Part shown: positions 1 to 59,890 of the stretch, one piece after another
Numbering within the stretch: position 1 is the stretch's first letter
Layout of the letters: each line of letters starts with the position of its first letter
Origin: Macrostomum lignano
Lineage: Eukaryota
Assembly (NCBI GenBank): GCA_002269645.1
Contig: NIVC01000692.1
Location: forward strand, 1 to 64,000
DNA length: 64,000 bases
Reading direction: 5' to 3'
Made by a program: the position numbers and the translations under genes
Notes under the pieces: model-generated
Told to the model about the DNA's origin: nothing
Databases searched by the model: none
Seen by the model: only the letters and a program-made list of their open reading frames with translations

Positions 1-3000
1 GAGCTCGTGAGCCCCGTCGCGCGAACGACGACGTCGCGATGAGCGCGCTCGCCGCGACATTGCAAGAGCGGAGCGCCGATTCGAAGACGATGAATTCGAG
101 GTCGACGAGATTGTTCAGGCCGAACAAGAAGTAGACGAGACGTGCGACACCAGATAGACCTGTTCGACGACAAAGTATTAGAAGATCGCGAGGCCAGCGA
201 GATCGAAGAGGATCTGCCTCCAATGCGCAAAGAAGACGAGTTGAAGGCGCCAGAGCGGGAGCGAGAGCGAGAAGCCGCGCGTCAAGAAGAGCTCGTGAGC
301 CACCGTCGCCGCGAACGACGACGTCGCGATGAGCGCGCTCGCCGCGACATTGCAAGGCGGAGCGCCGATTCGAAGACGATCAATTCAAGGTCGACGAGAT
401 TGTTCAGGCCGACGAAGAAGTACTGGTAGACGAGGACGTGCGACACCAGATAGACCTGTTCGACGACAAAGTATTAGAAGATCGCGAGGCCAGCGAGATC
501 GAAGAGGATCTGCCTCCAATGCGCAAAGAAGACGAGTTGAAGGCGCCAGAGCGGGAGCGAGAGCGAGAAGCCGCGCGTCAAGAAGAGCTCGTGAGCCACC
601 GTCGCCGCGAACGACGACGTCGCGATGAGCGCGCTCGCCGCGACATTGCAAGGCGGAGCGCCGATTCGAAGACGATCAATTCAAGGTCGACGAGATTGTT
701 CAGGCCGACGAAGAAGTACTGTAGACGAGACGTGCGACACCAGATAGACCTGTTCGACGACAAAGTATTAGAAGATCGCGAGGCCAGCGAGATCGAAGAG
801 GATCTGCCTCCAATGCGCAAAGAAGACGAGTTGAAGGCGCCAGAGCGGGAGCGAGAGCGAGAAGCCGCGCGTCAAGAAGAGCTCGTGAGCCACCGTCGCC
901 GCGAACGACGACGTCGCGATGAGCGCGCTCGCCGCGACATTGCAAGGCGGAGCGCCGATTCGAAGACGATCAATTCAAGGTCGACGAGATTGTTCAGGCC
1001 GACGAAGAAGTACTGGTAGACGAGGACGTGCGACACCAGATAGACCTGTTCGACGACAAAGTATTAGAAGATCGCGAGGCCAGCGAGATCGAAGAGGATC
1101 TGCCTCCAATGCGCAAAGAAGACGAGTTGAAGGCGCCAGAGCGGGAGCGAGAGCGAGAAGCCGCGCGTCAAGAAGAGCTCGTGAGCCACCGTCGCCGCGA
1201 ACGACGACGTCGCGATGAGCGCGCTCGCCGCGACATTGCAAGAGCGGAGCGCCGATTCAAACAGGATCAATTCAAGGTCGACGAGATTGTTCAGGCCGAC
1301 GAAGAAGTACTGGTAGACGAGGACGTGCGACACCAGATAGACCTGTTCGACGACAAAGTATTAGAAGATCGCGAGGCCAGCGAGATCGAAGAGGATCTGC
1401 CTCCAATGCGCAAAGAAGACGAGTTGAAGGCGCCAGAGCGGGAGCGAGAGCGAGAAGCCGCGCGTCAAGAAGAGCTCGTGAGCCACCGTCGCCGCGAACG
1501 ACGACGTCGCGATGAGCGCGCTCGCCGCGACATTGCAAGAGCGGAGCGCCGATTCGAAGACGATCAATTCAAGGTCGACGAGATTGTTCAGGCCGACGAA
1601 GAAGTAGACGAGACGTGCGACACCAGATAGACCTGTTCGACGACAAAGTATTAGAAGATCGCGAGGCCAGCGAGATCGAAGAGGATCTGCCTCCAATGCG
1701 CAAAGAAGACGAGTTGAAGGCGCCAGAGCGGGAGCGAGAGCGAGAAGCCGCGCGTCAAGAAGAGCTCGTGAGCCACCGTCGCCGCGAACGACGACGTCGC
1801 GATGAGCGCGCTCGCCGCGACATTGCAAGAGCGGAGCGCCGATTCGAAGACGATCAATTCAAGGTCGACGAGATTGTTCAGGCCGACAAGAAGTACTGGT
1901 AGACGAGGACGTGCGACACCAGATAGACCTGTTCGACGACAAAGTATTAGAAGATCGCGAGGCCAGCGAGATCGAAGAGGATCTGCCTCCAATGCGCAAA
2001 GAAGACGAGTTGAAGGCGCCAGAGCGGGAGCGAGAGCGAGAAGCCGCGCGTCAAGAAGAGCTCGTGAGCCACCGTCGCCGCGAACGACGACGTCGCGATG
2101 AGCGCGCTCGCCGCGACATTGCAAGGCGGAGCGCCGATTCGAAGACGATCAATTCAAGGTCGACGAGATTGTTCAGGCCGACGAAGAAGTACTGGTAGAC
2201 GAGGACGTGCGACACCAGATAGACCTGTTCGACGACAAAGTATTAGAAGATCGCGAGGCCAGCGAGATCGAAGAGGATCTGCCTCCAATGCGCAAAGAAG
2301 ACGAGTTGAAGGCGCCAGAGCGGGAGCGAGAGCGAGAAGCCGCGCGTCAAGAAGAGCTCGTGAGCCACCGTCGCCGCGAACGACGACGTCGCGATGAGCG
2401 CGCTCGCCGCGACATTGCAAGGCGGAGCGCCGATTCGAAGACGATCAATTCAAGGTCGACGAGATTGTTCAGGCCGACGAAGAAGTACTGGTAGACGAGG
2501 ACGTGCGACACCAGATAGACCTGTTCGACGACAAAGTATTAGAAGATCGCGAGGCCAGCGAGATCGAAGAGGATCTGCCTCCAATGCGCAAAGAAGACGA
2601 GTTGAAGGCGCCAGAGCGGGAGCGAGAGCGAGAAGCCGCGCGTCAAGAAGAGCTCGTGAGCCACCGTCGCCGCGAACGACGACGTCGCGATGAGCGCGCT
2701 CGCCGCGACATTGCAAGGCGGAGCGCCGATTCAAACAGGATCAATTCAAGGTCGACGAGATGTTCAGGCCGACGAAGAAGTACTGGTAGACGAGGACGTG
2801 CGACACCAGATAGACCTGTTCGACGACAAAGTATTAGAAGATCGCGAGGCCAGCGAGATCGAAGAGGATCTGCCTCCAATGCGCAAAGAAGACGAGTTGA
2901 AGGCGCCAGAGCGGGAGCGAGAGCGAGAAGCCGCGCGTCAAGAAGAGCTCGTGAGCCACCGTCGCCGCGAACGACGACGTCGCGATGAGCGCGCTCGCCG

Positions 3001-6000
3001 CGACATTGCAAGAGCGGAGCGCCGATTCGAAGACGATCAATTCAAGGTCGACGAGATTGTTCAGGCCGACGAAGAAGTAGACGAGGACGTGCGACACCAG
3101 ATAGACCTGTTCGACGACAAAGTATTAGAAGATCGCGAGGCCAGCGAGATCGAAGAGGATCTGCCTCCAATGCGCAAAGAAGACGAGTTGAAGGCGCCAG
3201 AGCGGGAGCGAGAGCGAGAAGCCGCGCGTCAAGAAGAGCTCGTGAGCCACCGTCGCCGCGAACGACGACGTCGCGATGAGCGCGCTCGCCGCGACATTGC
3301 AAGGCGGAGCGCCGATTCGAAGACGATCAATTCAAGGTCGACGAGATTGTTCAGGCCGACGAAGAAGTACTGGTAGACGAGGACGTGCGACACCAGATAG
3401 ACCTGTTCGACGACAAAGTATTAGAAGATCGCGAGGCCAGCGAGATCGAAGAGGATCTGCCTCCAATGCGCAAAGAAGACGAGTTGAAGGCGCCAGAGCG
3501 GGAGCGAGAGCGAGAAGCCGCGCGTCAAGAAGAGCTCGTGAGCCACCGTCGCCGCGAACGACGACGTCGCGATGAGCGCGCTCGCCGCGACATTGCAAGA
3601 GCGGAGCGCCGATTCGAAGACGATCAATTCAAGGTCGACGAGATTGTTCAGGCCGACGAAGAAGTACTGGTAGACGAGGACGTGCGACACCAGATAGACC
3701 TGTTCGACGACAAAGTATTAGAAGATCGCGAGGCCAGCGAGATCGAAGAGGATCTGCCTCCAATGCGCAAAGAAGACGAGTTGAAGGCGCCAGAGCGGGA
3801 GCGAGAGCGAGAAGCCGCGCGTCAAGAAGAGCTCGTGAGCCACCGTCGCCGCGAACGACGACGTCGCGATGAGCGCGCTCGCCGCGACATTGCAAGAGCG
3901 GAGCGCCGATTCAAACGATCAATTCAAGGTCGACAGATCGATCAGGCCGACGAAGAAGTACTGGTACGAGGACGTGCGACACCAGATAGACCTGTTCGAC
4001 GACAAAGTATTAGAAGATCGCGAGGCCAGCGAGATCGAAGAGGATCTGCCTCCAATGCGCAAAGAAGACGAGTTGAAGGCGCCAGAGCGGGAGCGAGAGC
4101 GAGAAGCCGCGCGTCAAGAAGAGCTCGTGAGCCACCGTCGCCGCGAACGACGACGTCGCGATGAGCGCGCTCGCCGCGACATTGCAAGAGCGGAGCGCCG
4201 ATTCAAACAGGATCAATTCAAGGTCGACAGATGATCAGGCCGACAAGCAAGTAGACGAAGACGTGCGACACCAGATGACCTGTTCGATGACGCAAAGTAT
4301 TAGAAGATCGCGAGGCCAGCGAGATCGAAGAGGATCTGCCTCCAATGCGCAAAGAAGACGAGTTGAAGGCGCCAGAGCGGGAGCGAGAGCGAGAAGCCGC
4401 GCGTCAAGAAGAGCTCGTGAGCCACCGTCGCCGCGAACGACGACGTCGCGATGAGCGCGCTCGCCGCGACATTGCAAGGCGGAGCGCCGATTCGAAGACG
4501 ATCAATTCAAGGTCGACGAGATTGTTCAGGCCGACGAAGAAGTACTGGTAGACGAGGACGTGCGACACCAGATAGACCTGTTCGACGACAAAGTATTAGA
4601 AGATCGCGAGGCCAGCGAGATCGAAGAGGATCTGCCTCCAATGCGCAAAGAAGACGAGTTGAAGGCGCCAGAGCGGGAGCGAGAGCGAGAAGCCGCGCGT
4701 CAAGAAGAGCTCGTGAGCCACCGTCGCCGCGAACGACGACGTCGCGATGAGCGCGCTCGCCGCGACATTGCAAGAGCGGAGCGCCGATTCGAAGACGATC
4801 AATTCAAGGTCGACGAGATTGTTCAGGCCGACAAGAAGTAGGTAGACGAGGACGTGCGACACCAGATAGACCTGTTCGACGACAAAGTATTAGAAGATCG
4901 CGAGGCCAGCGAGATCGAAGAGGATCTGCCTCCAATGCGCAAAGAAGACGAGTTGAAGGCGCCAGAGCGGGAGCGAGAGCGAGAAGCCGCGCGTCAAGAA
5001 GAGCTCGTGAGCCACCGTCGCCGCGAACGACGACGTCGCGATGAGCGCGCTCGCCGCGACATTGCAAGGCGGAGCGCCGATTCGAAGACGATCAATTCAA
5101 GGTCGACGAGATTGTTCAGGCCGACGAAGAAGTACTGGTAGACGAGGACGTGCGACACCAGATAGACCTGTTCGACGACAAAGTATTAGAAGATCGCGAG
5201 GCCAGCGAGATCGAAGAGGATCTGCCTCCAATGCGCAAAGAAGACGAGTTGAAGGCGCCAGAGCGGGAGCGAGAGCGAGAAGCCGCGCGTCAAGAAGAGC
5301 TCGTGAGCCACCGTCGCCGCGAACGACGACGTCGCGATGAGCGCGCTCGCCGCGACATTGCAAGAGCGGAGCGCCGATTCAAGAGATCAATTCAAGGTCG
5401 ACAGATCGATCAGGCCGACAAGCAAGTAGACGAGACGTGCGACACCAGATAGACCTGTTCGATGACAAAGTATTAGAAGATCGCGAGGCCAGCGAGATCG
5501 AAGAGGATCTGCCTCCAATGCGCAAAGAAGACGAGTTGAAGGCGCCAGAGCGGGAGCGAGAGCGAGAAGCCGCGCGTCAAGAAGAGCTCGTGAGCCACCG
5601 TCGCCGCGAACGACGACGTCGCGATGAGCGCGCTCGCCGCGACATTGCAAGAGCGGAGCGCCGATTCGAAGACGATCAATTCAAGGTCGACGAGATTGTT
5701 CAGGCCGACGAAGCAAGTAGACGAGGACGTGCGACACCAGATAGACCTGTTCGACGACAAAGTATTAGAAGATCGCGAGGCCAGCGAGATCGAAGAGGAT
5801 CTGCCTCCAATGCGCAAAGAAGACGAGTTGAAGGCGCCAGAGCGGGAGCGAGAGCGAGAAGCCGCGCGTCAAGAAGAGCTCGTGAGCCACCGTCGCCGCG
5901 AACGACGACGTCGCGATGAGCGCGCTCGCCGCGACATTGCAAGAGCGGAGCGCCGATTCGAAGACGATCAATTCAAGGTCGACGAGATTGTTCAGGCCGA

Positions 6001-9000
6001 CAAGCAAGTAGACGAAGACGTGCGACACCAGATAGACCTGTTCGACGACAAAGTATTAGAAGATCGCGAGGCCAGCGAGATCGAAGAGGATCTGCCTCCA
6101 ATGCGCAAAGAAGACGAGTTGAAGGCGCCAGAGCGGGAGCGAGAGCGAGAAGCCGCGCGTCAAGAAGAGCTCGTGAGCCACCGTCGCCGCGAACGACGAC
6201 GTCGCGATGAGCGCGCTCGCCGCGACATTGCAAGGGCGGAGCGCCGATTCGAAGACGATCAATTCAAGGTCGACGAGATTGTTCAGGCCGACGAAGAAGT
6301 ACTGGTAGACGAGGACGTGCGACACCAGATAGACCTGTTCGACGACAAAGTATTAGAAGATCGCGAGGCCAGCGAGATCGAAGAGGATCTGCCTCCAATG
6401 CGCAAAGAAGACGAGTTGAAGGCGCCAGAGCGGGAGCGAGAGCGAGAAGCCGCGCGTCAAGAAGAGCTCGTGAGCCACCGTCGCCGCGAACGACGACGTC
6501 GCGATGAGCGCGCTCGCCGCGACATTGCAAGGGCGAAGCGCCGATTCAAACAGGATCAATTCAAGGTCGATCAGATCGATCAGGCCGACAAGCAAGTAGA
6601 CGAAGACGTGCGACACCAGATAGACCTGTTCGACGACAAAGTATTAGAAGATCGCGAGGCCAGCGAGATCGAAGAGGATCTGCCTCCAATGCGCAAAGAA
6701 GACGAGTTGAAGGCGCCAGAGCGGGAGCGAGAGCGAGAAGCCGCGCGTCAAGAAGAGCTCGTGAGCCACCGTCGCCGCGAACGACGACGTCGCGATGAGC
6801 GCGCTCGCCGCGACATTGCAAGAGCGGAGCGCCGATTCAAGACGATCAATTCAAGGTCGACGAGATTGTTCAGGCCGACAAGAAGTAGACGAAGACGTGC
6901 GACACCAGATAGACCTGTTCGACGACAAAGTATTAGAAGATCGCGAGGCCAGCGAGATCGAAGAGGATCTGCCTCCAATGCGCAAAGAAGACGAGTTGAA
7001 GGCGCCAGAGCGGGAGCGAGAGCGAGAAGCCGCGCGTCAAGAAGAGCTCGTGAGCCACCGTCGCCGCGAACGACGACGTCGCGATGAGCGCGCTCGCCGC
7101 GACATTGCAAGGCGGAGCGCCGATTCGAAGACGATCAATTCAAGGTCGACGAGATTGTTCAGGCCGACGAAGAAGTACTGGTAGACGAGGACGTGCGACA
7201 CCAGATAGACCTGTTCGACGACAAAGTATTAGAAGATCGCGAGGCCAGCGAGATCGAAGAGGATCTGCCTCCAATGCGCAAAGAAGACGAGTTGAAGGCG
7301 CCAGAGCGGGAGCGAGAGCGAGAAGCCGCGCGTCAAGAAGAGCTCGTGAGCCACCGTCGCCGCGAACGACGACGTCGCGATGAGCGCGCTCGCCGCGACA
7401 TTGCAAGAGCGGAGCGCCGATTCAAACGATCAATTCAAGGTCGACGAGATTGTTCAGGCCGACGAAGAACTGGTAGACGAGGACGTGCGACACCAGATAG
7501 ACCTGTTCGACGACAAAGTATTAGAAGATCGCGAGGCCAGCGAGATCGAAGAGGATCTGCCTCCAATGCGCAAAGAAGACGAGTTGAAGGCGCCAGAGCG
7601 GGAGCGAGAGCGAGAAGCCGCGCGTCAAGAAGAGCTCGTGAGCCACCGTCGCCGCGAACGACGACGTCGCGATGAGCGCGCTCGCCGCGACATTGCAAGA
7701 GCGGAGCGCCGATTCGAAGACGATCAATTCAAGGTCGACGAGATTGTTCAGGCCGACGAAGAAGTACTGGTAGACGAGGACGTGCGACACCAGATAGACC
7801 TGTTCGACGACAAAGTATTAGAAGATCGCGAGGCCAGCGAGATCGAAGAGGATCTGCCTCCAATGCGCAAAGAAGACGAGTTGAAGGCGCCAGAGCGGAG
7901 CGAGAGCGAGAAGCCGCGCGTCAAGAAGAGCTCGTGAGCCACCGTCGCCGCGAACGACGACGTCGCGATGAGCGCGCTCGCCGCGACATTGCAAGAGCGG
8001 AGCGCCGATTCGAAGAGATCAATTCAAGGTCGATCAGATTGATCAGGCCGACAAGCAAGTAGACGAAGACGTGCGACACCAGATGACTGATCGATGACAA
8101 GTTTAGAAGATCGCGAGGCCAGCGAGATCGAAGAGGATCTGCCTCCAATGCGCAAAGAAGACGAGTTGAAGGCGCCAGAGCGGGAGCGAGAGCGAGAAGC
8201 CGCGCGTCAAGAAGAGCTCGTGAGCCACCTTCGCCACGAACGCCGACGTCGCGATGAGCGCGCTCGCCGCGACATTGCAAGAGCGGAGCGCCGATTCGAA
8301 GACGATGAATTCGACGTAGACGAGATTGTTCAGGCCGACGAAGAAGTACTGGTAGACGAGGACGTGCGACACCAGATAGACCTGTTCGACGACAAAGTAT
8401 TAGAAGATCGCGAGGCCAGCGAGATCGAAGAGGATCTGCCTCCAATGCGCAAAGAAGACGAGTTGAAGGCGCCAGAGCGGAGCGAGAGCGAGAAGCCGCG
8501 CGTCAAGAAGAGCTCGTGAGCCACCTTCGCCACGAACGCCGACGTCGCGATGAGCGCGCTCGCCGCGACATTGCAAGGGCGGAGCGCCGATTCAAGAGAT
8601 CAATTCAAGGTCGACAGATTGTTCAGGCCGACAAGCAAGTAGACGAAGACGTGCGACACCAGATGACTGTCGATGACAAAGTATTAGAAGATCGCGAGGA
8701 GCGAGATCGAAGAGGATCTGCCTCCAATGCGCAAAGAAGACGAGTTGAAGGCGCCAGAGCGGGAGCGAGAGCGAGAAGCCGCGCGTCAAGAAGAGCTCGT
8801 GAGCCACCGTCGCCGCGAACGACGACGTCGCGATGAGCGCGCTCGCCGCGACATTGCAAGGCGGAGCGCCGATTCGAAGACGATCAATTCAAGGTCGACG
8901 AGATTGTTCAGGCCGACGAAGAAGTACTGGTAGACGAGGACGTGCGACACCAGATAGACCTGTTCGACGACAAAGTATTAGAAGATCGCGAGCCAGCGAG

Positions 9001-11590
9001 ATCGAAGAGGATCTGCCTCCAATGCGCAAAGAAGACGAGTTGAAGGCGCCAGAGCGGGAGCGAGAGCGAGAAGCCGCGCGTCAAGAAGAGCTCGTGAGCC
9101 ACCGTCGCCGCGAACGACGACGTCGCGATGAGCGCGCTCGCCGCGACATTGCAAGAGCGGAGCGCCGATTCGAAGACGATCAATTCAAGGTCGACGAGAT
9201 TGTTCAGGCCGACAAGCAAGTAGACGAAGACGTGCGACACCAGATAGACCTGTTCGACGACAAAGTATTAGAAGATCGCGAGGCCAGCGAGATCGAAGAG
9301 GAGCTGCCTCCAATGCGCAAAGAAGACGAGTTGAAGGCGCCAGAGCGGAGCGAGAGCGAGAAGCCGCGCGTCAAGAAGAGCTCGTGAGCCACCGTCGCCG
9401 CGAACGACGACGTCGCGATGAGCGCGCTCGCCGCGACATTGCAAGGGCGGAGCGCCGATTCAAAGAGGATCAATTCAAGGTCGATCAGATCGATCAGGCC
9501 GACAAGCAAGTAGACGAAGACGTGCGACACCAGATAGACCTGTTCGATGACAAGTATTAGAAGATCGCGAGGCCAGCGAGATCGAAGAGGATCTGCCTCC
9601 AATGCGCAAAGAAGACGAGTTGAAGGCGCCAGAGCGGGAGCGAGAGCGAGAAGCCGCGCGTCAAGAAGAGCTCGTGAGCCACCGTCGCCGCGAACGACGA
9701 CGTCGCGATGAGCGCGCTCGCCGCGACATTGCAAGAGCGGAGCGCCGATTCGAAGACGATGAATTCGAGGTAGACGAGATTGTTCAGGCCGACAAGCAAG
9801 TAGACGAAGACGTGCGACGCCAGATAGACCTGTTCGATGACAAAGTATTAGAAGATCGCGAGGCCAGCGAGATCGAAGAGGATCTGCCTCCAATGCGCAA
9901 AGAAGACGAGTTGAAGGCGCCAGAGCGGGAGCGAGAGCGAGAAGCCGCGCGTCAAGAAGAGCTCGTGAGCCACCGTCGCCGCGAACGACGACGTCGCGAT
10001 GAGCGCGCTCGCCGCGACATTGCAAGAGCGGAGCGCCGATTCGAAGACGATCAATTCAAGGTAGACGAGATTGTTCAGGCCGACAAGCAAGTAGACGAAG
10101 ACGTGCGACGCCAGATAGACCTGTTCGATGACAAAGTATTAGAAGATCGCGAGCCAGCGAGATCGAAGAGGATCTGCCTCCAATGCGCAAAGAAGACGAG
10201 TTGAAGGCGCCAGAGCGGGAGCGAGAGCGAGAAGCCGCGCGTCAAGAAGAGCTCGTGAGCCACCGTCGCCGCGAACGACGACGTCGCGATGAGCGCGCTC
10301 GCCGCGACATTGCAAGGGCGGAGCGCCGATTCGAAGACGATGAATTTGAGGTAGACGAGATTTTCAGGCCGACAAGCAAGTAGACGAAGACGTGCGACGC
10401 CAGATAGACCTGTTCGATGACAAAGTATTAGAAGATCGCGAAGCCAGCGAGATCGAAGAGGATCTGCCTTCACTGGGCAAAGAAGACGAGTTGAAGGCGC
10501 CAGAGCGGGAGCGAGAGCGAGAAGCCGCGCGTCAAGAAGAGCTCGTGAGCCACCGTCGCCGCGAACGACGACGTCGCGATGAGCGCGCTCGCCGCGACAT
10601 TGCAAGAGCGGAGCGCCGATTCGAAGACGATGAATTCGAGGTAGACGAGATTGTTCAGGCCGACAAGCAAGTAGACGAAGACGTGCGACGCCAGATAGAC
10701 CTGTTCGATGACAAAGTATTAGAAGATCGCGAAGCCAGCGAGATCGAAGAGGATCTGCCTCCAATGCGCAAAGAAGACGAGTTGAAGGCGCCAGAGCGGG
10801 AGCGAGAGCGAGAAGCCGCGCGTCAAGAAGAGCTCGTGAGCCACCGTCGCCGCGAACGACGACGTCGCGATGAGCGCGCTCGCCGCGACATTGCAAGAGC
10901 GGAGCGCCGATTCGAAGACGATGAATTCGAGGTAGACGAGATTGTTCAGGCCGACAAGCAAGTAGACGAAGACGTGCGACGCCAGATAGACCTGTTCGAT
11001 GACAAAGTATTAGAAGATCGCGAAGCCAGCGAGATCGAAGAGGATCTGCCTTCACTGGCAAAGAAGACGAGTTGAAGGCGCCAGAGCGGGAGCGAGAGCG
11101 AGAAGCCGCGCGTCAAGAAGAGCTCGTGAGCCACCGTCGCCGCGAACGACGACGTCGCGATGAGCGCGCTCGCCGCGACATTGCAACAGCGGAGCGCCGA
11201 TTCGAAGACGATCAATTCAAGGTCGACGAGATTGTTCAGGCCGACGAAGAAGTACTGGTAGACGAGGAAGTGCGACACCAGATAGACCTGTTCGACGACA
11301 AAGTATTAGAAGATCGCGAGGCCAGCGAGATCGAAGAGGAGCTTCCTTCATTGTGCAAAGAAGACGATTTGAAGGCGCCAGAGAGAGAGCGAGAGCGGAA
11401 GCCATGCGTCTAGAAGAGCTCGTGAGCCACCGTCGCCGCGAACGACGACGTCGCGATGAGCGCGCTCGCCGCGACATTGCAAGAGCGGAGCGCCGATTCA
11501 AAGAGGATCAACTCAAGTTCGTCGAAATAGATCAGGCCGACAAGCAAGTAGACGAAGACGTGCGACACCAGCTGGACTTGCTCGATGAGG
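1..11590 (+). repeat. Tandem array of ~295 bp CpG-rich units (~39-40 copies)
   Basis: Motif gtgcgacaccagatagacctgttcgacgac recurs at 142, 438, ~732, 1028 ... ~11560 with near-identical intervening sequence; divergence rises in the last 2-3 units. Confidence 0.97.
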
Positions 11591-12822
11591 CAGGGTGTCT
11601 TAAGGAAAGGAATATTTTTGCAGCTTCTAGGATGACAGTTCGTTTTTTGGATGTTGTCAACGAGTTACGCTTTCTCCTTGATGTTATTTGTAACCCGGAG
11701 GTGGACGTTTTATCTGATGGTTTCGAATCATCAGAATTTTTCGATGGTAGCAGCAGTGTTTCGTTTAGTCAGCTTTGCTTGGATGTGCAAGAGGATGGAT
11801 ATTCGGCTGATCGAAGCATGAGTATTTCTCGTCGAGCTTTTTGGCGCGGTTCGTCTGATGAGTCTACTTTATTTTCTACTGGCTCTTTTTGCTCTGTGTC
11901 AGTTTTTGAACGCCCAGCTTCTGTTGAGCGCTTGTCTTCAAAGAGATGGAGGAGCCGATCTGTCGACCGTGCAATTTCTCCCTATCGAAGCGTTCGCAAT
12001 TTGTCGGATTTCGATGGCGAATCGTGGCTTCGAGTCCAACAGCGTTTTCCCATCCCTAAAAAAATACGAGTAAACAGTGATAAACTTTCAGAGCGTTCTC
12101 GAGAATCAACAAAGTGCTGGCCAATATGGTTTGCAGACTCTGAAAACTCCGATGAAGCTGGTGCCGATGCAGATGACTCTGGTTCAGGTGACGTAAAAGC
12201 TGTTGTTGAAAAAACTGGTGCTGGTGCTGATGAAGCGGCTGCAGGAGCCAATAAAGCTGGTGCTGCATCTGGCTCTAAAACTTCCTTCAGTGAAAGGGCG
12301 CCAATGGTTTCCACAATAAGCGCGCTTAGCGACGCCGACCAAAGCCAGCTACTTGGTCGCATTGTGTTTAGTCAGTTTCGTGGAGCCACCTCCGTAGACT
12401 GGGCTCAGCTGGAGTCCCAGATGGAGCGAGCAATGCGATATTTGGAAGGCAAGATTCGAGAGGTTCACGCGAGCAACGACGCCTCCACCGATGCTGACTC
12501 GGTGTCCACTGCTTCGGTTAGGAAGGATGAGCGGCCTGCTGAATATGATTGGGACGCGCGAGCGCGCTGGCTGCTTGACAATTGGACTCGGCCTGAGTTA
12601 GCCGACTGCGGCGCGCTCCGCCTGCTGCTCGGCCGCATCATTGTGAGCCAGTTTGTGGCCCGGCCAGCCCAGCCATGGTCAACTCTGCGCGAGAATTTGG
12701 CGCCGCCACCGCCTTCGCCGTCCGCGGCTTGGCCCGACTCGTCTGACCCGTCGCTGAAATCGGAGTCTTCGAAAGTCTCCACCGGCGGCGTCTGTTGCGG
12801 GTCGCGTCGCGGCAAGCGCTGA
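1..12822 (+). CDS. Giant tandem-repeat protein, 5' end outside window: ~39-40 copies of a 97-99 aa Glu/Arg/Asp-rich module plus ~400 aa unique C-terminus; many 1-bp frameshifts in the array
   Basis: One stop-free reading (VRHQIDLFDDKVLEDREASEIEEDLPPMRKEDELKAPEREREREAARQEELVSHRRRERRRRDERARRDIARAERRFEDDQFKVDEIVQADEEVLVDED) recurs in every unit. Intact units are 297 or 291 bp (multiples of 3), and several run in frame consecutively (ORFs 3385-4164, 5624-7087). The last units read without a stop into non-repetitive ORF 11353-12822, ending GGVCCGSRRGKR*. No homolog recognised. Confidence 0.6.
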
Positions 12823-13389
12823 CAAAATTTACTTTGACAGACTGTTGAGTAGAAACCGTTTTTCTTTCTCTTTTTTAACTTTATCGGAATAAGCGGAATC
12901 GACTGAAACAAATATACATGTTTGCGGCATTGAGGGCTGATTAAAGTTTTGCTTTAACTGTCTACTCTAATTTTGGTTTGAATCTTTTTAACCGGTTTTT
13001 ATAACATTCAGGCCGAAACAAAAATCATATGAGCCGAAACTATAAATGATAGCTTGCATTTACCTTGTATTTGACATTTTAATGCTTTATTTTATAGTAC
13101 TCGTAGTATCCAGGAAAAATTTTTGGTTAAAAAGTAAGGGCAATTTACTTGCAACCGGGAGAAAGTCTTACTGTGCTTCTGCTTTTTCTACCTGTTTTTC
13201 TGGGTCTACGTACAAGTTAGCCTACCTTCGTAGTGACATCAATAGGCCGTAATTTTCAAGCAATGAGTTCGTTAACTTGTAAACGTGAAACTTACGAGCA
13301 TACACTAAACGAATAAAGCTAGGTGCTATCTGGTCTCTTCGTAATATAACCCGATAATATTAAGCACACAAAACGAGTGTAGTGTACTC

Positions 13390-13490
13390 AGAGTAGTGTC
13401 CGAGTAATATCCGAGTAGTGTCCGAGTAGTGTCTGAGTAGTTTCCGACTAGCATTCGAGCAGTGTCTGGGTAGCAATCATGTAGTGTCTG
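13390..13490. repeat. Degenerate 11-bp tandem repeat (ccgagtagtgt)
   Basis: ccgagtagtgt/ctgagtagttt/ccgactagcat/tcgagcagtgt run visible directly. Confidence 0.6.
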
Positions 13491-13845
13491 AGAAGTACTT
13501 GGGTAATTTATTAACGAGTTCGAGCAGAGCGCCTGTAATAACTGATACGGAGTTAGAGTTATATGTAGTGAGAAATAATAACTAAAAAATGAAAATGCCT
13601 CTTCGGTCTGAATTGCGACTGTAGCGCGCTTCATTAACTGTAATTCAACATTATTGGCTTTCAAAAATACATGTCAATTAGCTACTAGAAGTAGGCAACT
13701 GGATTAACTGACTCGGCGATCTTTTATTTTCGACTGGCGATTGGTGGAAAGCCAACCGCGGAGTCCATTTGCTCCGCAGTTGCTCAAATATCCAAACAAA
13801 TTGCAACATGCCGATGCCAACTCAGCCTCAACAGGCTGCGCTAAC

Positions 13846-16800
13846 ATGGCTGAGAAGCTGGCACCACTGATGATGATGCTGCTTCTACTAGGGCTGCTCG
13901 AGAGTTTGCCTCTCAGTGCTGGACTGCTTGACCTCTATGTGACCCGCAATGATATGTGAGCTGCTGTCAGTAAGTTTCTTATGAATCTGGCTGTGAATCA
14001 GCCTCACTAATACTAACAGAAACTAAGTTAGATAGACACTAGGACGGACACTAAAACAATATGATAGACACTAAGACAGACACCCCGGACAAACACTAGA
14101 ACACTAGGACAGACACCCGGGGACACTAAAACACTAGGACAGACACAAAAACACTAGGATAGACACCCGGACAGACACTAGGACAGACACATAAACACTA
14201 GGACAGACACCCGGAGACACTAAAACAATAGGATAGACACAAAAACACTAGGACAGGCACAGAAACACTAGGACAGACACCCGGAGACACTAAAACAATA
14301 GGATAGACACAAAAACACTAGGACAGGCACAGAAACACTAGGACAGACACCCGGAGACACTAAAACAATAGGATAGACACAAAAACACTAGGATAGACAC
14401 CCGGACAGACACTAGGACAGACACATAAACACTAGGACAGACACCCGGAGACACTAAAACAATAGGATAGACACAAAAACACTAGGATAGACACCCGGAC
14501 AGACACTAGGACAGACACATAAACACTAGGACAGACACCCGGAGACACTAAAACAATAGGATAGACACAAAAACACTAGGATAGGCACAGAAACACTAGG
14601 ACAGGCACAGAAGCACTAGGACAGACATCCGGAGAGACACTAGGACAGACACAAAAACACTAGGATAGACACAAAAACACTAGGATAGGCACAGAAACAC
14701 TAGGATAGGCACAGAAACACTAGGACAGACACAAAAACAATAGGATAGACACAAAAACACTAGGACAGGCACAGAAACACTAGGACAGACACCCGGAGAC
14801 ACTAAAACAATAGGATAGACACAAAAACACTAGGATAGGCACCCGGACAGACACTAGGACAGACACATAAACACTAGGACAGACACCCGGAGACACTAAA
14901 ACAATAGGATAGACACAAAAACACTAGGATAGGCACAGAAACACTAGGACAGGCACAGAAGCACTAGGACAGACACCCGGAGAGACACTAGGACAGACAC
15001 AAAAACACTAGGACAGACATGACAGACACCCGGTCAGACACTGAGACAGACACAAGGACAGGCCCTATGAAAGGCAGACTGGCTCAACCCGCAGGATCAG
15101 GCAACGCCTCCAGGGTCTTTTACGTGTTCAATGGAACGGTGAACAAATACGCGCTCGGCTTCAGCATCTCCGTGCCGCTGTCGGTGGCAAAGCTGCGATT
15201 TCGCTGGGCCAACAGGGCCGGCCACGAGGCGAGTGGGCTATCGGCGGTTGGAAGAAAAGCCAACTGTTTCGGAACAACAAAAAACTCACTTTTCCACCAA
15301 TAATGGCATATTTTGCCACTGTTGCTTTCGCATTTGATACCACTTTGGGGACAGTTAGATGGTCGCAATGTAATTGAGCTCGCAATGTAGCTCGCAGTCA
15401 ACGTGAAGTGATTATTTAATTAATTCGTCTAGTTTTAGCAGTGAACGCGTAATCTATTCGTAAGCGATACAATAATTTCAGATGCCCTACTCGATCGGCT
15501 TCTCGGTGGAGGACCAGAAAGCCATGGGCTCGCCAGTGTTAAGCATTGCTGCCCAGGGATTCGTGCCGCACGCCGACTCAAGTAGGGATACTGGGTTGAG
15601 GATCTAAGACTGAGAGATTGAGGAAGTGAGACTGAGGGATTGAGGACATGAGACTGGGGGACTGAGGTACTGAGGGACTGAGGTACTGAGGGACTGAGGT
15701 ACTGAGGGACTGAGGTACTGAGGGACTGAGGTACTGAGGGACTGAGGTACTGAGGGACTGAGGTACTGAGGGACTGAGGTACTGAGGGACTGAGGTACTG
15801 AGGGACTGAGGTACTGAGGGACTGAGGTACTGAGGGACTGAGGTACTGAGGGACTGAGGTACTGAGGGACTGAGGTACTGAGGGACTGAGGTACTGAGGG
15901 ACTGAGGTACTGAGGTACTGAGGTACTGAGGGACTGAGGTACTGAGGGACTGAGGTACTGAGGGACTGAGGTACTGAGGGACTGAGGTACTGAGGGACTG
16001 AGGTACTGAGGGACTGAGGTACTGAGGGACTGAGGTACTGAGGGACTGAGGTACTGAGGGACTGAGGTACTGAGGGACTGAGGTACTGAGGGACTGAGGT
16101 ACTGAGGGACTGAGGTACTGAGGGACTGAGGTACTGAGGGACTGAGGTACTGAGGGACTGAGGTACTGAGGGACTGAGGTACTGAGGGACTGAGGTACTG
16201 AGGGACTGAGGTACTGAGGGACTGAGGTACTGAGGGACTGAGGTACTGAGGGACTAGGTACTGAGGGACTGAGGTACTGAGGGACTGAGGTTGAGGGACT
16301 GAGGTACTGAGGGACTGAGGTACTGAGGGACTGAGGTACTGAGGGACTGAGTACACGATACTGGAATTGAGTAACTGTGGGACAAAAGGGACTGAGGGGC
16401 TAAAGCTGAGTGACTGAAGACACGAGACTGAGGGACTGAGGCTGAGGGAATGAAACTGAGGGACTGAGGACACGAGACTGGGGGGCTGAGGACATGAGAC
16501 TGAGGGACTGAGGTACTGAGGTTGAGGGACTGAGTACACGAGACTGAGGGATTGAGCGGCCTAAGGTGAATAGTGTGTGTGTCCTGGTTTAATGTGGGGG
16601 ATCGGAGAGGCGCCAGGTGTGACAGCCAAGAGAAAAGCAAATCAAAATGGAAGCACATGTACTTCGCCCTGCTTTTCTATCCAATAAAGCTTCGAAAAAT
16701 AAGGCAATTCTTGGCGTCGAAAGACGTAAAGGAGACAGAAGGTGATAACGACTGCAAAGGTTGACGGAAAGGGAGCAAAATTATTGGCCAGTAGACGAAT

Positions 16801-19800
16801 ATTTTTCTCAGAACGAAAGCTATGCCGAATTTTTTTACAATCGCTTTTGTTTAAATTGCAGCATTCGACGCCTCGCTGCCCTGCACTGGGGCAGCGCTCG
16901 CCGAGGTGCCGCTGGCCATCCTGCTGAATGTCACCCTACGGCCTGGCGAGCCGCCCGTGCAACTGCGGATTCGCAGGCGAAAATTGTGCGGCCGGACTGC
17001 CGGGAATCGCCGGAGTTTGCTGAGCGGTAGGAAGGGAACTGGGGTGGTGGGAAGGGAACTGGGGTGGTGGGAAGGGAACTGGGGTGGTGGGAAGGGAACT
17101 GGGGTGGTGGGAAGGGAACTGGGGTGGTGGGAAGGGAACTGGGGTGGTGGGAAGGGAACTGGGGTGGTGGGAAGGGAACTGGGGTGGTGGGAAGGGAACT
17201 GGGGTGGTGGAAGGGAACTGGGGTGGTGGGAAGGGAACTGGGGTGGTGGGAAGGGAACTGGGGTGGTGGGAAGGGAACTGGGGTGGTGGGAAGGGAACTG
17301 GGGTGGTGGGAAGGGAACTGGGGTATTGGGAAGGGTGTTGTGATAAAAATTGAAGTATCTTGGAGAGCAAAAGCCAGAATTTAACTACCAATTACACTCG
17401 TATATTAAATACAAAAATACGTCAAACTCTCTCAATGAATTTAAAGCTTGATTTCATTAAAAAATTTACAGAAGAAGAGAAGCCAAAGTCAGATAAAAAG
17501 TCTACAGCAGAGACACGAGAGCAGTCAGTTCTCTCTGAAACAAATCAGGCGGCTGTCGCGGTGCGCACGCCAGCGGCATTGACACTGCTGCTCCCGCTGC
17601 TGTTTGTGTTGCTTGTGGCGCTGCTGGCCGCGGCAGCGGTCACCTACCTGCTGCTATGCCGCTGCTTCCGCTTGAAAAAAGCCAGCTCTGGCGCCGCCAC
17701 CGCAGCTGCGTCGGCTGGCAAAGCGGCGGCGTTAAAAGGCCGCACGCTGCAGAGCACGGCAGTGATTTGGAGCGACGGGTCGGACAGCTGCAGCCTGACC
17801 AGCAGGGCCACCTCCTCCAGTGAGACGACGCTGAGAATAGATCTGGGAATGCTCCTAATTATTCAATTTCTGAAAGCTGTGTATAACTCACAATAAATAG
17901 GCTGAGTGAGAATGTCTAAGGCTCAGAGTAGTGGTCTAAGGCTGGGAGAGTAGATGTCTAAGGCTAAGAGAGTACTCGTAGATGTCTAGGGCTGAGAGAT
18001 ATCCAAGGCTGAGAGATGTCTAAGGCTGAGAGAAAATGTCTCAGCCTTATTTAAGAGAAAATAATAATAACAATTGATTGCACCTGCCCCAGTTGGTCAG
18101 ATGTACAACCAACAGCTCAGCCGCAGTTATTGCTCGGCGCATCTGAAGGCTGCGTACGGCTGTTCAGTCCAAGGACTGGGGGGTCGCCACACACAGCCTC
18201 AATTACCCCAGCTAATGCTGGCACCCATTTTACAGCTGGGTGAACTGAAGCACTGCAGAGTTGTGTCTTGCTCAAGGACACAAATTGTTCGAGTGGGTCG
18301 AGAATGGAACCCCCGACCTTTAAATCGTGAGTCCGACGCTCTAATCACTAGACTACAGCCCATTAGGCTCAAAGTAGATGTCTAAGGCTCAGAGTAGATG
18401 TCTAAGGCTCAGAGTAGATGTCTAAGGCTCAGAGTAGATGTCTAAGGCTCAGAGTAGATGTCTAAGGCTCAGAGTAGATGTCTAAGGCTCAGAGTAGATG
18501 TCTAAGGCTCAGAGTAGATGTCTAAGGCTCAGAGTAGATGTCTAAGGCTCAGAGTAGATGTCTAAGGCTCAGAGTAAATGTCTAAGGTAGATGTCTAATA
18601 TCTAATATTAAATCCCTATCCTCGCTCCACCGCCTGCAGACCAGCCCAGCCACCAGTTGGGCGCCTCACCCATAGTGCAACGCCGCATCAGTAGCCCTCG
18701 GGAAATTCTGTTAGAGGTTCAAACCGCGTGGCATACAGTCAGCCTTGAGTACACCCTAATGGAAGGTGAGCCCTGTGACCAGATATATTGACTTCGGTCC
18801 AGATATTTCAGGTGCTGGCTGCGTGAGAACTCTGAAGCACGCCCGCCACACTGCAGGCTGCTACGGTCTGGTTTACCGAGGCAGCTGGGAGCCGCCCCAC
18901 GGCCGTGGTAGGAACATCGTCAAGAGTGGGCGCGAGGAGGTGCTGATCAAGACAGTGGTCGGTGAGTGGCTGAATCGAGGGCGATTTCGGTTTAGCCAAT
19001 AAACGTTCATAATTACATGTATGCTAATCGATGATTGGGGATGCTGATTAAAACTAACTCCAAATTTTAACAGCATATTCCAACGCCACCCAACTTCAAC
19101 ACTTCGATTCCAACACCCTAATTCCAGCACCCCAATTCCAGCATGCCAATTCCAGCACCCAGATTCCAGCACCCCAATTCCAGCCACCCAGATTATAGCA
19201 TCCCAATTCCAGCACCCAGATTCCAGCACCCCAATTCCAGCACCCCAAATCCAGCACCCCAATTCCAGCATCCCAATTCCAGCCACCCAGGTTCCAGCAC
19301 CCCAATTCCAGCATCCCAATTTCAGCCACCCAGGTTCCAGCACCCCAATTCCAGCATCCCAATTTCAGCCACCCAGGTTCCAGCACCCCAATTCCAGCCA
19401 CCCAGATTCCAGCACCCCAATTCCAGCGCCGAGATTCCAGCACCCCAATTCCAGCACCCAGATTCCAGCCACCCAGGTTCCAGCACCCCAATTCCAGCAC
19501 CCCAAATCCAGCACCCCAATTCCAGCATCCCAATTCCAGCCACCCAGGTTTCAGCACCCCAATTCCAGCACCCCAATTCCAGCCACCCAGGTTCCAGCAC
19601 CCCAATTCCAGCGCCGAGATTCCAGCACCCCAATTCCAGCACCCAGATTCCAGCCACCCAGGTTCCAGCACCCCAATTCCAGCACCCCAAATCCAGCACC
19701 CCAATTCCAGCATCCCAATTCCAGCCACCCAGGTTTCAGCACCCCAATTCCAGCACCCAGATTCCAGCACCCCAATTCCAGCACCCCAATTCCAGCACCC

Positions 19801-22800
19801 CAATTCCAGCATCCCAATTCCAGTCACCCAGATTCCAGCACCCCGATTCCAGCACTTCAACTCCGCCAGCCCCAATTACAGCACCTCAGTTCCAACTCCG
19901 CAACTCCAACTCCCATTCCAACACCGCAATTCTGCAAAGCATGATTCCAACACAGTCCCATTCCAAAGCACTAAATTCATAGACATCAATAAACGCACGA
20001 TTTTAGAATTTCTCTGATCCAACTATAAAAGCAAATTTCTGCCGAAAAAACACAAGCAAACTATGTCCCTCTTCTCTCATCTAAGCTCTTTGAGCGAATT
20101 TATTGTCCCTCTATCCGCAACTGCCAGGCGATTACAAACTGGACAGCAAAGTGCGTTTAGCCAGTGGAAACGAAAACCAACCAACTACCCGCAGTCCCGA
20201 TGGGAAACGTTGGATGGCGTGGGATATTTCTCACGCAGCCCCGCCCCCTGTTTCCCAACCTTGGGCATCGCAGTCCCGGTCGAATGCAATTTCCTGATTG
20301 CCAGGCAAAGTGAGCGTCGAGAAGCTGCGGGTTGAGCGGCAGCGGGCTCTCCGGGGCTGACGGGTGTGCGTGGGAACAGGCCTGGTCGAAGCCGACAGCC
20401 AGTGAGGCATCGATTGAAATGCAGGAATTGCTTAGAGCAAGCTTGCTAGCTTGGAATAGCGGCATACGAACTTAATAATCTAGCAGAGAAAAACTATTCC
20501 AGCTCGCCAGTTCCATTACGCCTATGGAAAAAGTTATTAATCCACTGATAAATCGATGTTAAAAAAGCAGAGCAGTTTTGTTTCCGCTGGCCAAGTCAAT
20601 TTAGAACAGCATAACTGTAAACTCAGGATAAATATCTAATTAATGACCGGCTGCAGGCAATTAAGAGATGGGTTCTGGTGTTCAGCAACCCATCAAGTTG
20701 CGGCTAGATGGTTGCTCATTTGCTCACTCTGGCCCTGTATGAAAGCACAGGTGTGCTCACTCTGGCCCTGTATGAAAAGCACAGGTGTGCTCACTCTGGC
20801 CCTGTATGAAAAGCACAGGTGTGCTCACTCTGGCCCTGTATGAAAGCACAGGTGTGCTCACTCTGGCCCTGTATGAAAGCACAGGTGTGCTCACTCTAAA
20901 TCTTGAAGACAAGCACAGGTGTGCTCACACTAGGTCCTGAAGACAAGCACAGGTGTTTCTCACACTAGGTCCTGAAGGCAAGCACAGGTGTGCTCACTCT
21001 GGCCCTGTATGAAAGCACAGGTGTGCTTACACTAGGTCCTGAAGACAAGCACAGGTGTGCTCACTCTAGGTCCTGAACTCAAAAAACTTAATGGGAGGTC
21101 GAGTAAGCTGTCCAGTTAAACCGGACAATGAAAGGCCCAGCTGCCGTTTTTCCTTCATCGCTGCACGAGCAGAGGCTGCCCGGCTTGACCAGCTGAGCGC
21201 CGTGTCGCAGTCGGGAGTCCTGCTGGCCGGCCTGCAGCACAGGCACGTCAATCCGCTGCTTGCCTCGACCATGCCGCCCGGCGATCCCAGACCGCACCTG
21301 ATCTACCCCAACCCGGCTGGCGGCAACCTGAAGCTGCGCTTGATCGACAGCTGCGCCGGCCGGCCGGACCACGTGAGCGTGAGCATTACAGCCCCGCATT
21401 CCCGTAGACTGTCGCTCATGGAGTATTAGACAAGGACTACTCAAGTAACATATACAGTGGCGCACAATGAATTACTATGAATGAATACTACTCCAAGCAA
21501 AAAATGATCTTGAACTCTCCCAGAATGGGAAAAGGCAGAGCTCTATCGCCTGAGTCGTGTAGCAAAATAAAGATCCTGTTCGACCAAGGAGTTTCCCAGC
21601 GAGCCAAAGCCACGCAGCTGGGAAAGTAAAAAAAACACGCGTCCAGCAAGCCCTCAGGCGCCTCAGCAGCACAGGCAGCACAGGCTGTGCCCCAAGACCT
21701 GGCAGGGCACCGAAAACTGACCACGGACTGGATCGACGAATTGTGCGAGTGTCCGAGTCAAACCGTCGGCTCACCGCTGTGGACATCAGCCGTGAACTTC
21801 TGGTGCCCAGTGGTGTCCAGCTGCACCCCATGACTGTCCGCCGCCGTCTGGTAGCTGCTGGACTGCAAGGCCGCATTGCTAGGAAGAAGCCGTTTATCTC
21901 CGACAAAAACCGGGAAGCGGCGCTTGAACTGGCCGAAGCAGCATGCAAGCTAGACACCCCAGGACTGGGCCAAGACCAACTGGAGTGACGAGAGCAAATT
22001 TCCCGCACTGATTCTGACGGCCGCCAATATGTGCGCCACCGAGCTGGTGAGGAACTCGATCCCAGGTGCACCGTAGGTGGTAATGTCATGGTGTGGGCTG
22101 GATTGTGAGCTGGGCCTGGGCCAATAACTCGCATTGAGGGCGTCATGGACAGTCAGAAGTACCGTGGCATCCTCGGTAGCCACCTACAAGAGGCAGTAGT
22201 TGCGCTGCCACTGGGTGTAGTGAACAGCTGGCAGTTTCAGCAGGACAACCATCCGAAGCAAACCTCCAAGTTTGTGAATGCATGGCTTGCTGAGAACAAC
22301 ATCCGCACCATGGACTGGCCAGCGCAGTCACCAGACCTCAATCCGATTAAGAAATGGTGGAACTGGGTTGAGCGGGACGGACATCCAGAGGCAGCAGCCA
22401 GCTTCCCTTGGTCAGCTGTACCGTGTCATTGAGGACTCGTGGGCTGCCATTGCGGCAGAAGTGTGCCAGAAGCTGGTGGACAGCATGCCTAGGCGGTGCA
22501 ATGCTGTGTGATTAAGTCAAAAGGACCTGCTACGAAGTATTAGAGTAGTTAGTTTGATATCAGTGACATTTGCTTGGCTTATTTCCCAAGTATTTATATA
22601 TGGTCTTATTTCAATGTTAAACCTAAAACTGTACTTCCCATTCAAATATCAGCTTTTTGAACTAAACACTGCTGGAAATTGAGCCAAAATACTAAATAAA
22701 TAACATAAAGTAATATTCCTACAAGTTTTACTTCCAATTTAGTACTTGAATTTAGTTCAAAGACCAGTATGCCAAAAAAATAATTTTACTTGGTGGTCCT

Positions 22801-24863: not shown

Positions 24864-24870
24864 GAGGGTA

Positions 24871-25195
24871 GGAACTGAGCTGGTGGGAGATGCTGTGCGA
24901 CATCAGAAGAGGAACTGAGCTGGTGGGAGATGCTGTGCGACATCAGGGGAGGAACTGAGCTGGTGGGAGATGCTGTGCGACATCAGAAGAGGAACGAGCT
25001 GGTGGGAGATGCTGTGCGACATCAGAAGAGGAACTGAGCTGGTGGGAGATGCTGTGCGACATCAGAGGAGGAACTGAGCTGGTGGGAGATGCTGTGCGAC
25101 ATCAGAAGAGGAACGAGCTGGTGGGAGATGCTGTGCGACATCAGGGGAGATACTGAGCTGGTGGGAGATGCTGTGCGACATCAGGGGAGGAACTA
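24871..25195. repeat. 40-bp minisatellite (ggaactgagctggtgggagatgctgtgcgacatcagaaga) x~8 immediately after the RYK stop codon
   Basis: Head-to-tail copies with only 1-4 variable bases; no spacers. Confidence 0.92.
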
Positions 25196-25579
25196 AGAAG
25201 AGCTACAAGAGAAGAAAATGTGTATTCTTTATCAATTCCGCATGGCATCTTTGTTGGTAAATTTGTAACATATTCTTATTAGAATTGAAATAGAAAATAG
25301 AAAAAAGGTAAAAACCAATTCTTATGGTTTAGTCAGTACGAGCTGCTTATCAACTGCAGCAGCTTACTGGTGTTTGTAGCAGAAATCGCTGTACTATAGT
25401 TTATTCAAAACCAGGGAGACTTTATCAAGTAAAGTCGACTGAACTCGCAAATCGGAGCATTTAAAACTGACTAGCAAACTCTCGGGTCCAACATCCTAAG
25501 GAAGGGGATTCAGCAGTTTATGCAGTGGCGTACGGGCATTCGCAGTTTGACCCACAATACGGACTCTGAACAGCATTGG

Positions 25580-38270: not shown

Positions 38271-38579
38271 GTTTCTCATGACTGAATCCTGCTTTAAAAC
38301 TATAGTATCCCAACTTCTTGGGGATAAATAAGGTCGGAGAAGCGACAGCTCATAAGCTGTGATGCAAACTACGCGCTACAGGTAACAGTAATCAAATGTA
38401 ATATCGAGATCGCAACATTGATTGAAAATTTAGGATCAAATATAATTTTCAGCGACAAATCGATCTCAATGAAAATTTTCAGTCTTAAGGTAAACGCAGC
38501 TCTCTACGATTGCTGCCAATCAGCGCACAATTATTACTAATTTTACTTTTTTCTCTTGAAGTTTGTCTGTCCCGCACAG

Positions 38580-59860: not shown

Positions 59861-59890
59861 TGTTAGTTCATGAGTTTATGAGTTCATGAG

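Follow-up and report, generated by a model that had tools for sequence, protein, structure and literature searches.

A tandem array of probable coding origin in Macrostomum lignano, likely a decaying copy of a repeat-protein gene

We present an analysis of a tandem array of ~300-nucleotide (nt) units in the flatworm Macrostomum lignano. The array lies at the beginning of a 64,000-nt stretch of genomic DNA (contig NIVC01000692.1 of assembly GCA_002269645.1, positions 1 to 64,000 of the forward strand), which we refer to as the window. A sequence-only reading of this DNA had proposed a giant polyampholyte repeat protein of more than 4,200 amino acids (aa). The sequence as given is no single giant protein gene: there is no open frame across the array, so a continuous protein of that size is not encoded as assembled. 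The explanation that we favor is that the array is a macrosatellite of coding origin, probably a decaying (pseudogenising) copy of a Macrostomum-specific repeat-protein gene.

In this explanation, a module of ~99 aa, in which a basic R/E block is followed by an acidic block interrupted by prolines, would have come from a Macrostomum-specific gene and would have been amplified head to tail, with unequal crossing-over and gene conversion maintaining the similarity of the copies. The older history would have passed under selection for the frame in which the unit had originally been read (hereafter the proposed frame), and propagated 1- and 2-nt deletions would now break ~30 of the 39 units, leaving no single giant protein. 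What may still be translatable is confined to the terminal open reading frame (ORF; 11353/11404-12822) and to a few runs of no more than five units. The decay could be caused by relaxed constraint on a redundant copy, most loci being present in about three paralogous copies. Published work puts the share of the M. lignano genome that occurs in three copies at ~85% (PMC10733133), and such redundancy would allow one of the copies to decay.

The array and the state of its reading frame

Tandem Repeats Finder (TRF) reports positions 1-11585 as a single array with a period of 296, 39.6 copies, 96% matches and 1% indels, and the anchor GAGCTCGTGAGCC is present 40 times, delimiting 40 head-to-tail units, 39 of them full. 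The ~40 copies of a module described previously are thereby borne out. Because the window start cuts the array, it is longer in the genome. The main features are the following.

1..11415, plus strand: u01-u39, units of the 297/291-nt array, delimited by TRF, anchor spacing, unit alignment and a table of variants
3532-3828, plus strand: u13, the cleanest 297-nt unit, open in one frame, with the 99-aa peptide ELVSHRRRERRRRDERARRDIARAERRFEDDQFKVDEIVQADEEVLVDEDVRHQIDLFDDKVLEDREASEIEEDLPPMRKEDELKAPEREREREAARQE
5624-7087, plus strand: longest ATG-started ORF within the array (487 aa, ~5 units), inside a stop-free run of 552 codons
11416..11595, plus strand: u40, the most diverged unit, last and truncated (RRFKEDQLKFVEIDQADKQVDEDVRHQLDLLDEAG), with the junction to unique sequence
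11353 (GTG) or 11404 (ATG)..12822, plus strand: terminal ORF of 489 or 472 codons, with TGA at 12820-12822

The plus strand is purine-rich, with 58% G+C and an AT skew of about +0.39, and the 297-nt unit does not occur elsewhere in the window outside the array. Alignment of the units distinguishes two main types, a long type with GAAGAAGTACTGGTAGAC (EEVLVDE) and a short type with AAGCAAGTAGAC (KQVDE) that is 6 nt shorter. The most diverged units, u39 and u40, are those at the 3' edge. The array thus combines a long head-to-tail arrangement, local homogenisation of neighboring units and diverged edge units. Macrosatellites that contain ORFs or are derived from them have units of hundreds of bp and evolve by unequal crossing-over. 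The array resembles them in its units of ~300 bp, its length of at least 11.6 kb, its blocks of identical neighbors, its subfamilies and its decayed or diverged edges; it differs in that a unit makes up just part of one long frame and is not a gene in itself, and in that only one locus family is seen.

The u13 peptide contains E21, R20, D14 and K4, is 59.6% charged with a net charge of -11, and lacks C, G, N, T, W and Y, in exact agreement with the composition given in the sequence-only reading. The variants named there also keep the frame, namely the 6-nt indel EEVLVDE/KQVDE and the substitutions Q>E, K>E, R>L and R>H. The further statement that unit lengths are multiples of 3 holds for a minority only. 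The 39 full units measure 296 nt (12 units), 290 nt (7), 291 nt (5), 297 nt (3), 292 nt (3) and other lengths, and 11 of the 39 lengths are divisible by 3, which is no excess over one third (p=0.80). Only ~9 full units are cleanly open and ~30 of the 39 are frameshifted, most units having 1- or 2-nt deletions. The variant table contains ~30 distinct indel events, nearly all of them deletions and ~27 of them frameshifting; just three are multiples of 3, i.e., the 6-nt difference between the long and short types and two 3-nt deletions. Both alternative plus-strand frames have one stop in every unit and, consequently, each frameshift ends translation within one unit. Within the first 13 kb there are 80-144 stops per plus-strand frame and the longest stop-free run is 552 codons, against which a protein of more than 4,200 aa in the window, as assembled, does not stand.

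Some of the deletions occur in pairs. In u14 (starting at 3829), u19 (5297) and u30 (8510) a shared 1-nt deletion lies 20 nt after a 2-nt deletion that takes two forms, and together they change KEDQFKVDE to KRSIQGRQ and regain the frame; the ML2 model has a similar FKKRSIQ.

At the 3' end of the array, u40 continues in frame into the unique sequence of the terminal ORF, and to this extent the array does read into a unique C-terminus, up to 12822, as had been claimed. The claim fails one unit earlier: u39 has a 1-nt deletion near its end, which puts the last full unit out of frame with the terminal ORF, and this ORF opens at 11353, after the stop due to that deletion. The terminal ORF consists of one unit and a unique part of ~410 aa with an internal duplication of LLGRI(V/I)(F/V)SQF. 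Pfam and Protein Data Bank (PDB) sequence searches gave no match for it, and its AlphaFold2 model has a predicted local distance difference test score (pLDDT) of 42.9 and is mostly of low confidence, the unit-derived helix in the first ~60 residues being the only confident part. We considered the terminal ORF as the first exon of the RYK-like kinase gene that lies downstream and rejected this, because the kinase gene starts with a signal-peptide exon of its own, at 13846.

Probable coding ancestry, relatives and the predicted peptide

The pattern of variants indicates that the unit was very probably once coding in the proposed frame. The 65 substitution events of the window include no stop-creating change in this frame and five such changes in each of the other frames. 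When codon usage is scored after training on ~2,100 codons from the window's other genes, the score is positive only in the proposed frame for the unit and only in the ORF frame for the terminal ORF. Selection on the encoded residues is less clear within the window, where 22 synonymous and 43 non-synonymous events (ratio ~0.5) amount to a mild synonymous excess over a spectrum-matched null (P ~0.06).

The 5' end of this repeat family is also found on a separate M. lignano contig, NIVC01002625.1 of the Mlig_3_7 assembly (GCA_002269645.1). We call the 20.4 kb analyzed there L001; it has the following features upstream of the 297-nt family units.

L001 1-6275: 234-nt array, 26 units that are 100% identical in DNA and have no indel, upstream of the 297-nt family
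L001 6276-7340: decayed unit copies at the 5' edge of the array, directly before the 297-nt family array

The L001 array has 46 copies of the unit, 45 of them full, with lengths of 268-297 nt. The first 160 nt of the unit occur in just two versions among the 46 copies, and the second half has 1- and 2-nt deletions common to blocks of neighboring units, e.g., CGTCAGAA in ~17 units and a 2-nt loss in a GAGCG run in ~10 units. In-frame lengths are in excess here (24 of 45; p=0.004), and the subfamilies A (297 nt) and B (282 nt) are set apart by frame-preserving indels, 3 and 12 nt in length. An excess of frame-preserving change, on which the case for a protein had been made to depend, is therefore present in L001 and absent from the window, with 3 of 30 events and 11 of 39 lengths. 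The comparison of rates gives a similarly divided answer: between A and B, over the diverged second half, synonymous divergence (dS) is 1.16, non-synonymous divergence (dN) is 0.32 and dN/dS is 0.28, which points to past constraint, and the window units supply the mild excess given above. The picture that these sequences suggest is one of old in-frame variation overlaid by young frameshifts. Coding ancestry and present frameshifts occur together, as expected of a decaying coding repeat provided that the disruptions are real.

The L001 units at 7342-20423 are also mosaic, in that the first 160 nt are near-invariant in 46 copies and the second half shows a dS above 1 between A and B. This suggests that gene conversion was confined to half of the unit, or that subfamily B arose by recombination. 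The 234-nt array of L001 has two frames without a stop over at least 2,092 codons, and one of these frames reads as a 78-aa acidic unit, VPDERGLLQEHEAFDKMYVYAEECVSWEEEAAHFEEERVPPALAREEELWRREEKKHFFEAVEEEAKKKPSAEEADL; the perfect identity of its units could reflect a very recent expansion or a consensus artefact. An open array in this upstream position raises the possibility that the ancestral gene had several repeat regions.

Relatives of the unit were sought in several databases. It has no Pfam or PDB match, and an exhaustive HMMER search over 1.84 billion representative proteins yielded only three true relatives, all from M. lignano.

A0A1I8HPW6: 3,445 aa
A0A1I8F6H6: 231 aa
PAA56389.1 (BOX15_Mlig012748g2, partial): 141 aa, on NIVC01002625.1

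All three are automatic models and uncharacterised. The earlier inability to name a family was thus well founded, and the description of the protein as unrecognised needs amendment, the locus being already in public databases under these uncharacterised proteins. A0A1I8HPW6 is collinear with the window at 88-100% identity and runs from the units to the C-terminal region and on to RYK-like exons. Its invented introns leap over the frameshifts, and 11597-12372 is cut out as an intron although it is open in frame. The model is a chimera (window 12373-35319) that fuses the array, part of the terminal ORF and the neighboring RYK-like kinase and that further on, over ~26.2-35.3 kb, follows plus-strand frames in a region where the phosphorylase, CAP and cupin ORFs described below are on the minus strand. 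It is named 'Ig-like domain-containing protein', and no such domain was seen in this analysis. A0A1I8F6H6 visibly changes among the three frames of the unit. A further candidate relative, P0003 (2,715 aa), was dismissed, having matched only a low-complexity stretch of the terminal ORF. Literature searches found nothing on Mlig012748, and none of the papers listed describes satellites or tandem repeats of M. lignano.

The peptide that the unit would encode consists of a basic R/E block (HRRRERRRRDERARR, net charge ~+6) followed by a long acidic, Pro-interrupted block (~-15). For three consecutive intact units (5876-6754), single-sequence AlphaFold2 gives a mean pLDDT of 80 and a predicted template modelling score (pTM) of 0.28, with helices of 58-91 residues at pLDDT 85-95 that are broken around DLPPMRK..KAP. 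If translated, the peptide is thus predicted to form long helices interrupted at DLPPMRK..KAP. This is a prediction for a peptide that perhaps is never made, and to that extent it accords with the earlier interpretation. Single alpha-helix (SAH) and trichohyalin-like proteins contain E-R-K repeats. The unit is like them in its very high content of E and R and in the long unbroken helix predicted with high pLDDT over the R/E block, and unlike them in its segregation of charges into two blocks, in i,i+4 pairing at the level of shuffled sequences and in having no sequence homology to them. In 2,000 composition-preserving shuffles, opposite-charge pairs were not enriched at i,i+4 (z = -0.63), with z = +1.49 at i,i+3, and the argument for SAH from an i,i+4 pattern of E, R and K is thus not supported in that form; the charges lie in a basic and then an acidic block.

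The closest known systems include, besides the uncharacterised entries themselves and ORF-derived macrosatellites, two giant lineage-specific repeat proteins of M. lignano, Mlig-ap1 (5,407 aa) and Mlig-ap2 (14,794 aa) (PMC6410801). The array is similar to them in belonging to the same organism and in having a huge repeat region, long units and no homologues outside the lineage; the Mlig-ap2 units are 221-255 aa long and the KR regions of Mlig-ap1 are extremely charged (PMC6410801). The two proteins have intact ORFs, regions rich in Cys and binding domains that are known, and their expression and secretion are proven (PMC6410801), whereas the unit of the array is 97-99 aa long, has no Cys and no domain, is of mixed charge (net -11) and lies in a broken frame. 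Neither KR-rich or 221/255-aa repeats, nor Cys-rich regions, nor vWD, TIL, TSP1, EGF or C-lectin domains were found for the array.

Probably genuine frameshifts and competing explanations

The question of whether the frameshifts exist in the animal was judged on internal sequence evidence. On this basis a true break of the array in this copy seems to us likely. The commonest frameshift is the loss of one base at unit position 69, which changes CAAGAGCGG to CAAGGCGG. It is present in 11 of the 19 long-type units and in none of the 20 short-type units (Fisher p=4.5e-5), although the long/short difference is ~60 nt away from position 69 and the local context is identical in both types; moreover, u22, which is otherwise identical to the units with this deletion, reads GGG at the site. 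The combination is that of an inherited variant rather than of a context-dependent error. The k-mers that distinguish the variants at position 69 are ATTGCAAGGCGGAGCG for the deletion, which as assembled affects ~28% of units, and ATTGCAAGAGCGGAGCG and ATTGCAAGGGCGGAGCG for its counterparts; the other paired variant k-mers are GTAGACGAGACGTGCGAC versus GTAGACGAGGACGTGCGAC, and CGTCAGAAGAGCTC versus CGTCAAGAAGAGCTC and CGTCCAGAAGAGCTC. The distribution of indels within the unit leads in the same direction: positions 69-186 hold 38 of the 48 indel instances, and substitutions cluster in this stretch too (chi-square p=1e-7; p=1e-4 with the position-69 deletion left out).

A control is available in the same window. 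The 66-nt array at 38771-48126 lies inside an intact ORF of 3,937 codons, and every spacing between its anchors is divisible by 3. According to a direct shift scan, ungapped duplicates that are 400 nt or longer and ~97.5% or more identical cover 6.5 of its 9.4 kb, and one of them extends over 2,119 nt at 99.86%. This array is equally hard to polish, yet the frame is kept over 11.8 kb. In L001, ~7 kb of first halves of units are clean and the frameshifts strike selected sites only, which is not what noise would leave.

Several observations weigh against genuine frameshifts. Deletions at GG/GGG runs (unit positions 147, 201 and 266) recur on unrelated unit backgrounds and in this resemble consensus errors. 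Each of u32-u39 is disrupted by just a single 1-nt deletion, private or recurrent, so the 3' end of the array could really be open. Frameshifts that are compensated within 8-9 codons, i.e., -2 and then -1 in u14, u19 and u30, and those of the 294-nt units of L001, hint that the frame still matters. GenBank annotates a partial coding sequence inside the array (PAA56389.1), which is the only hint of a transcript or peptide, and two gene models read through the array, though only by splicing round the breaks. Contig searches with P0001, P0004, two versions of the terminal ORF and two other ORFs of the window found no second copy of the 3' end of the array. Assembly error in so near-identical an array is still conceivable.

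One alternative is that the array does encode a true giant polyampholyte protein, in one continuous exon of more than 4,000 codons that possibly continues from the upstream 234-nt repeat region, with the frameshifts being long-read consensus errors in near-identical repeats that short reads were unable to polish. Published M. lignano assemblies are PacBio-based and described as error-prone (PMC10733133), and the organism does make giant repeat proteins, Mlig-ap1 and Mlig-ap2 (PMC6410801). The indels being nearly all deletions, several of them recurrent at GG/GGG runs on unrelated backgrounds, would fit this possibility, as would the absence of substitutions that make a stop in frame, the frame-keeping old variants with their dN/dS of 0.28, the in-frame join of the array to a long unique ORF, and the compensated frameshifts. 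Against it stand the binding of the commonest frameshift to one unit haplotype (p=4.5e-5), the confinement of indels to the same third of the unit as substitutions, and the equally repetitive coding sequence of the window without a frameshift over 11.8 kb. In L001, furthermore, ~7 kb of first halves and 26 copies of the 234-nt unit are free of noise and the frameshifts appear block-wise at particular sites. We consider a giant protein encoded by this copy unlikely.

A second alternative, which seems to us improbable, is that the real gene is the terminal ORF alone (ATG 11404 to 12822, 472 aa) and that the array is its amplified 5' coding end, at most non-coding upstream sequence or untranslated region. 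The ORF opens just past the u39 frameshift, and its ATG at 11404 arises from a unit variant (GCG>ATG) that the ML2 gene model P0001 has too (EAMRQEEL). Its codon-usage score is positive, and a unique open frame of 410 codons is very unlikely by chance. The unique part, however, has no homologue, domain or confident fold by HMMER, Pfam, PDB and AlphaFold2, and the same facts are compatible with the decay of a larger gene. Least credible of all, and very improbable in our view, is an ordinary non-coding satellite that happens to have an open frame because its strand is poor in T and rich in purines: stop codons are rare at a plus-strand AT skew of ~+0.39, the other two plus-strand frames have only one stop per unit and the window is packed with non-coding minisatellites, but a repeat that was never under coding constraint should not have a dN/dS of 0.28, in-frame subfamily indels, stop-creating substitutions that are absent in this frame only, codon usage that favors this frame, an in-frame join to a unique ORF and, in L001, an array that abuts another open array.

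If the decay that we favor is real, the array would be an example of a coding repeat turning satellite-like in a recently polyploid genome, with old in-frame variation still visible beside young frameshifts. Above all, it provides a caution, since a clean consensus unit made a broken array pass for a giant protein and automatic gene models conceal the breaks. It is a tentative suggestion, which we would not put forward as probable, that some paralogous copy, or this copy once error-corrected, encodes an intact protein of several thousand residues composed of helical block-polyampholyte modules, with the 78-aa acidic repeats that are intact in L001 perhaps in front of them. The product of such a copy would be a giant charged protein restricted to flatworms, which would act as a rod or form condensates and would have no relatives elsewhere, and it would be a third kind of giant lineage-specific repeat protein in M. 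lignano, a laboratory model in which in situ hybridisation and RNA interference are routine.

Other features of the window

The remainder of the window contains a giant repeat ORF, ordinary animal genes and numerous minisatellites.

38731-50544, minus strand: giant repeat ORF, 3,937 codons intact, with an open 5' end, so that it may be longer
13846-25945, plus strand: RYK-like receptor tyrosine kinase gene with WIF and PK_Tyr domains (Pfam)
26041-26706, minus strand: exon-sized ORF, PNP_UDP_1 phosphorylase (Pfam)
29383-29832, minus strand: exon-sized ORF, CAP and EGF-like (Pfam)
33186-33851, minus strand: exon-sized ORF, Cupin_8/JmjC (Pfam)
33804-34726: minisatellite, 14-nt unit, 64 copies
36682-38280: minisatellite, 24-nt unit, 67 copies
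58751-59875: minisatellite, 12-nt unit, 89 copies

The ORF at 38731-50544 has ~150 copies of a 22-aa (66-nt) or 18-aa (54-nt) unit, ERVDQPANSAAASDTDLVEPDA, after a unique N-terminal part of 800 aa for which Pfam gave no match, and it is a better candidate than the 297-nt array for a real giant repeat protein in the window. The RYK-like gene begins with the signal-peptide exon at 13846 (MAEKLAPLMMMLLLLGLLESLPLSAG...), followed by ~11 more exons, and minisatellites (14036-15019, 15596-16556, 17026-17335, 18365-18587, 19107-19932 and 24870-25194) fill its introns. The three exon-sized ORFs on the minus strand belong to ordinary animal genes. Rfam and tRNA scans of the window were empty. The 24-nt minisatellite (36682-38280) is open in several frames on both strands. 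Overall, the window is unusually rich in tandem repeats, in agreement with what is reported for the M. lignano genome.

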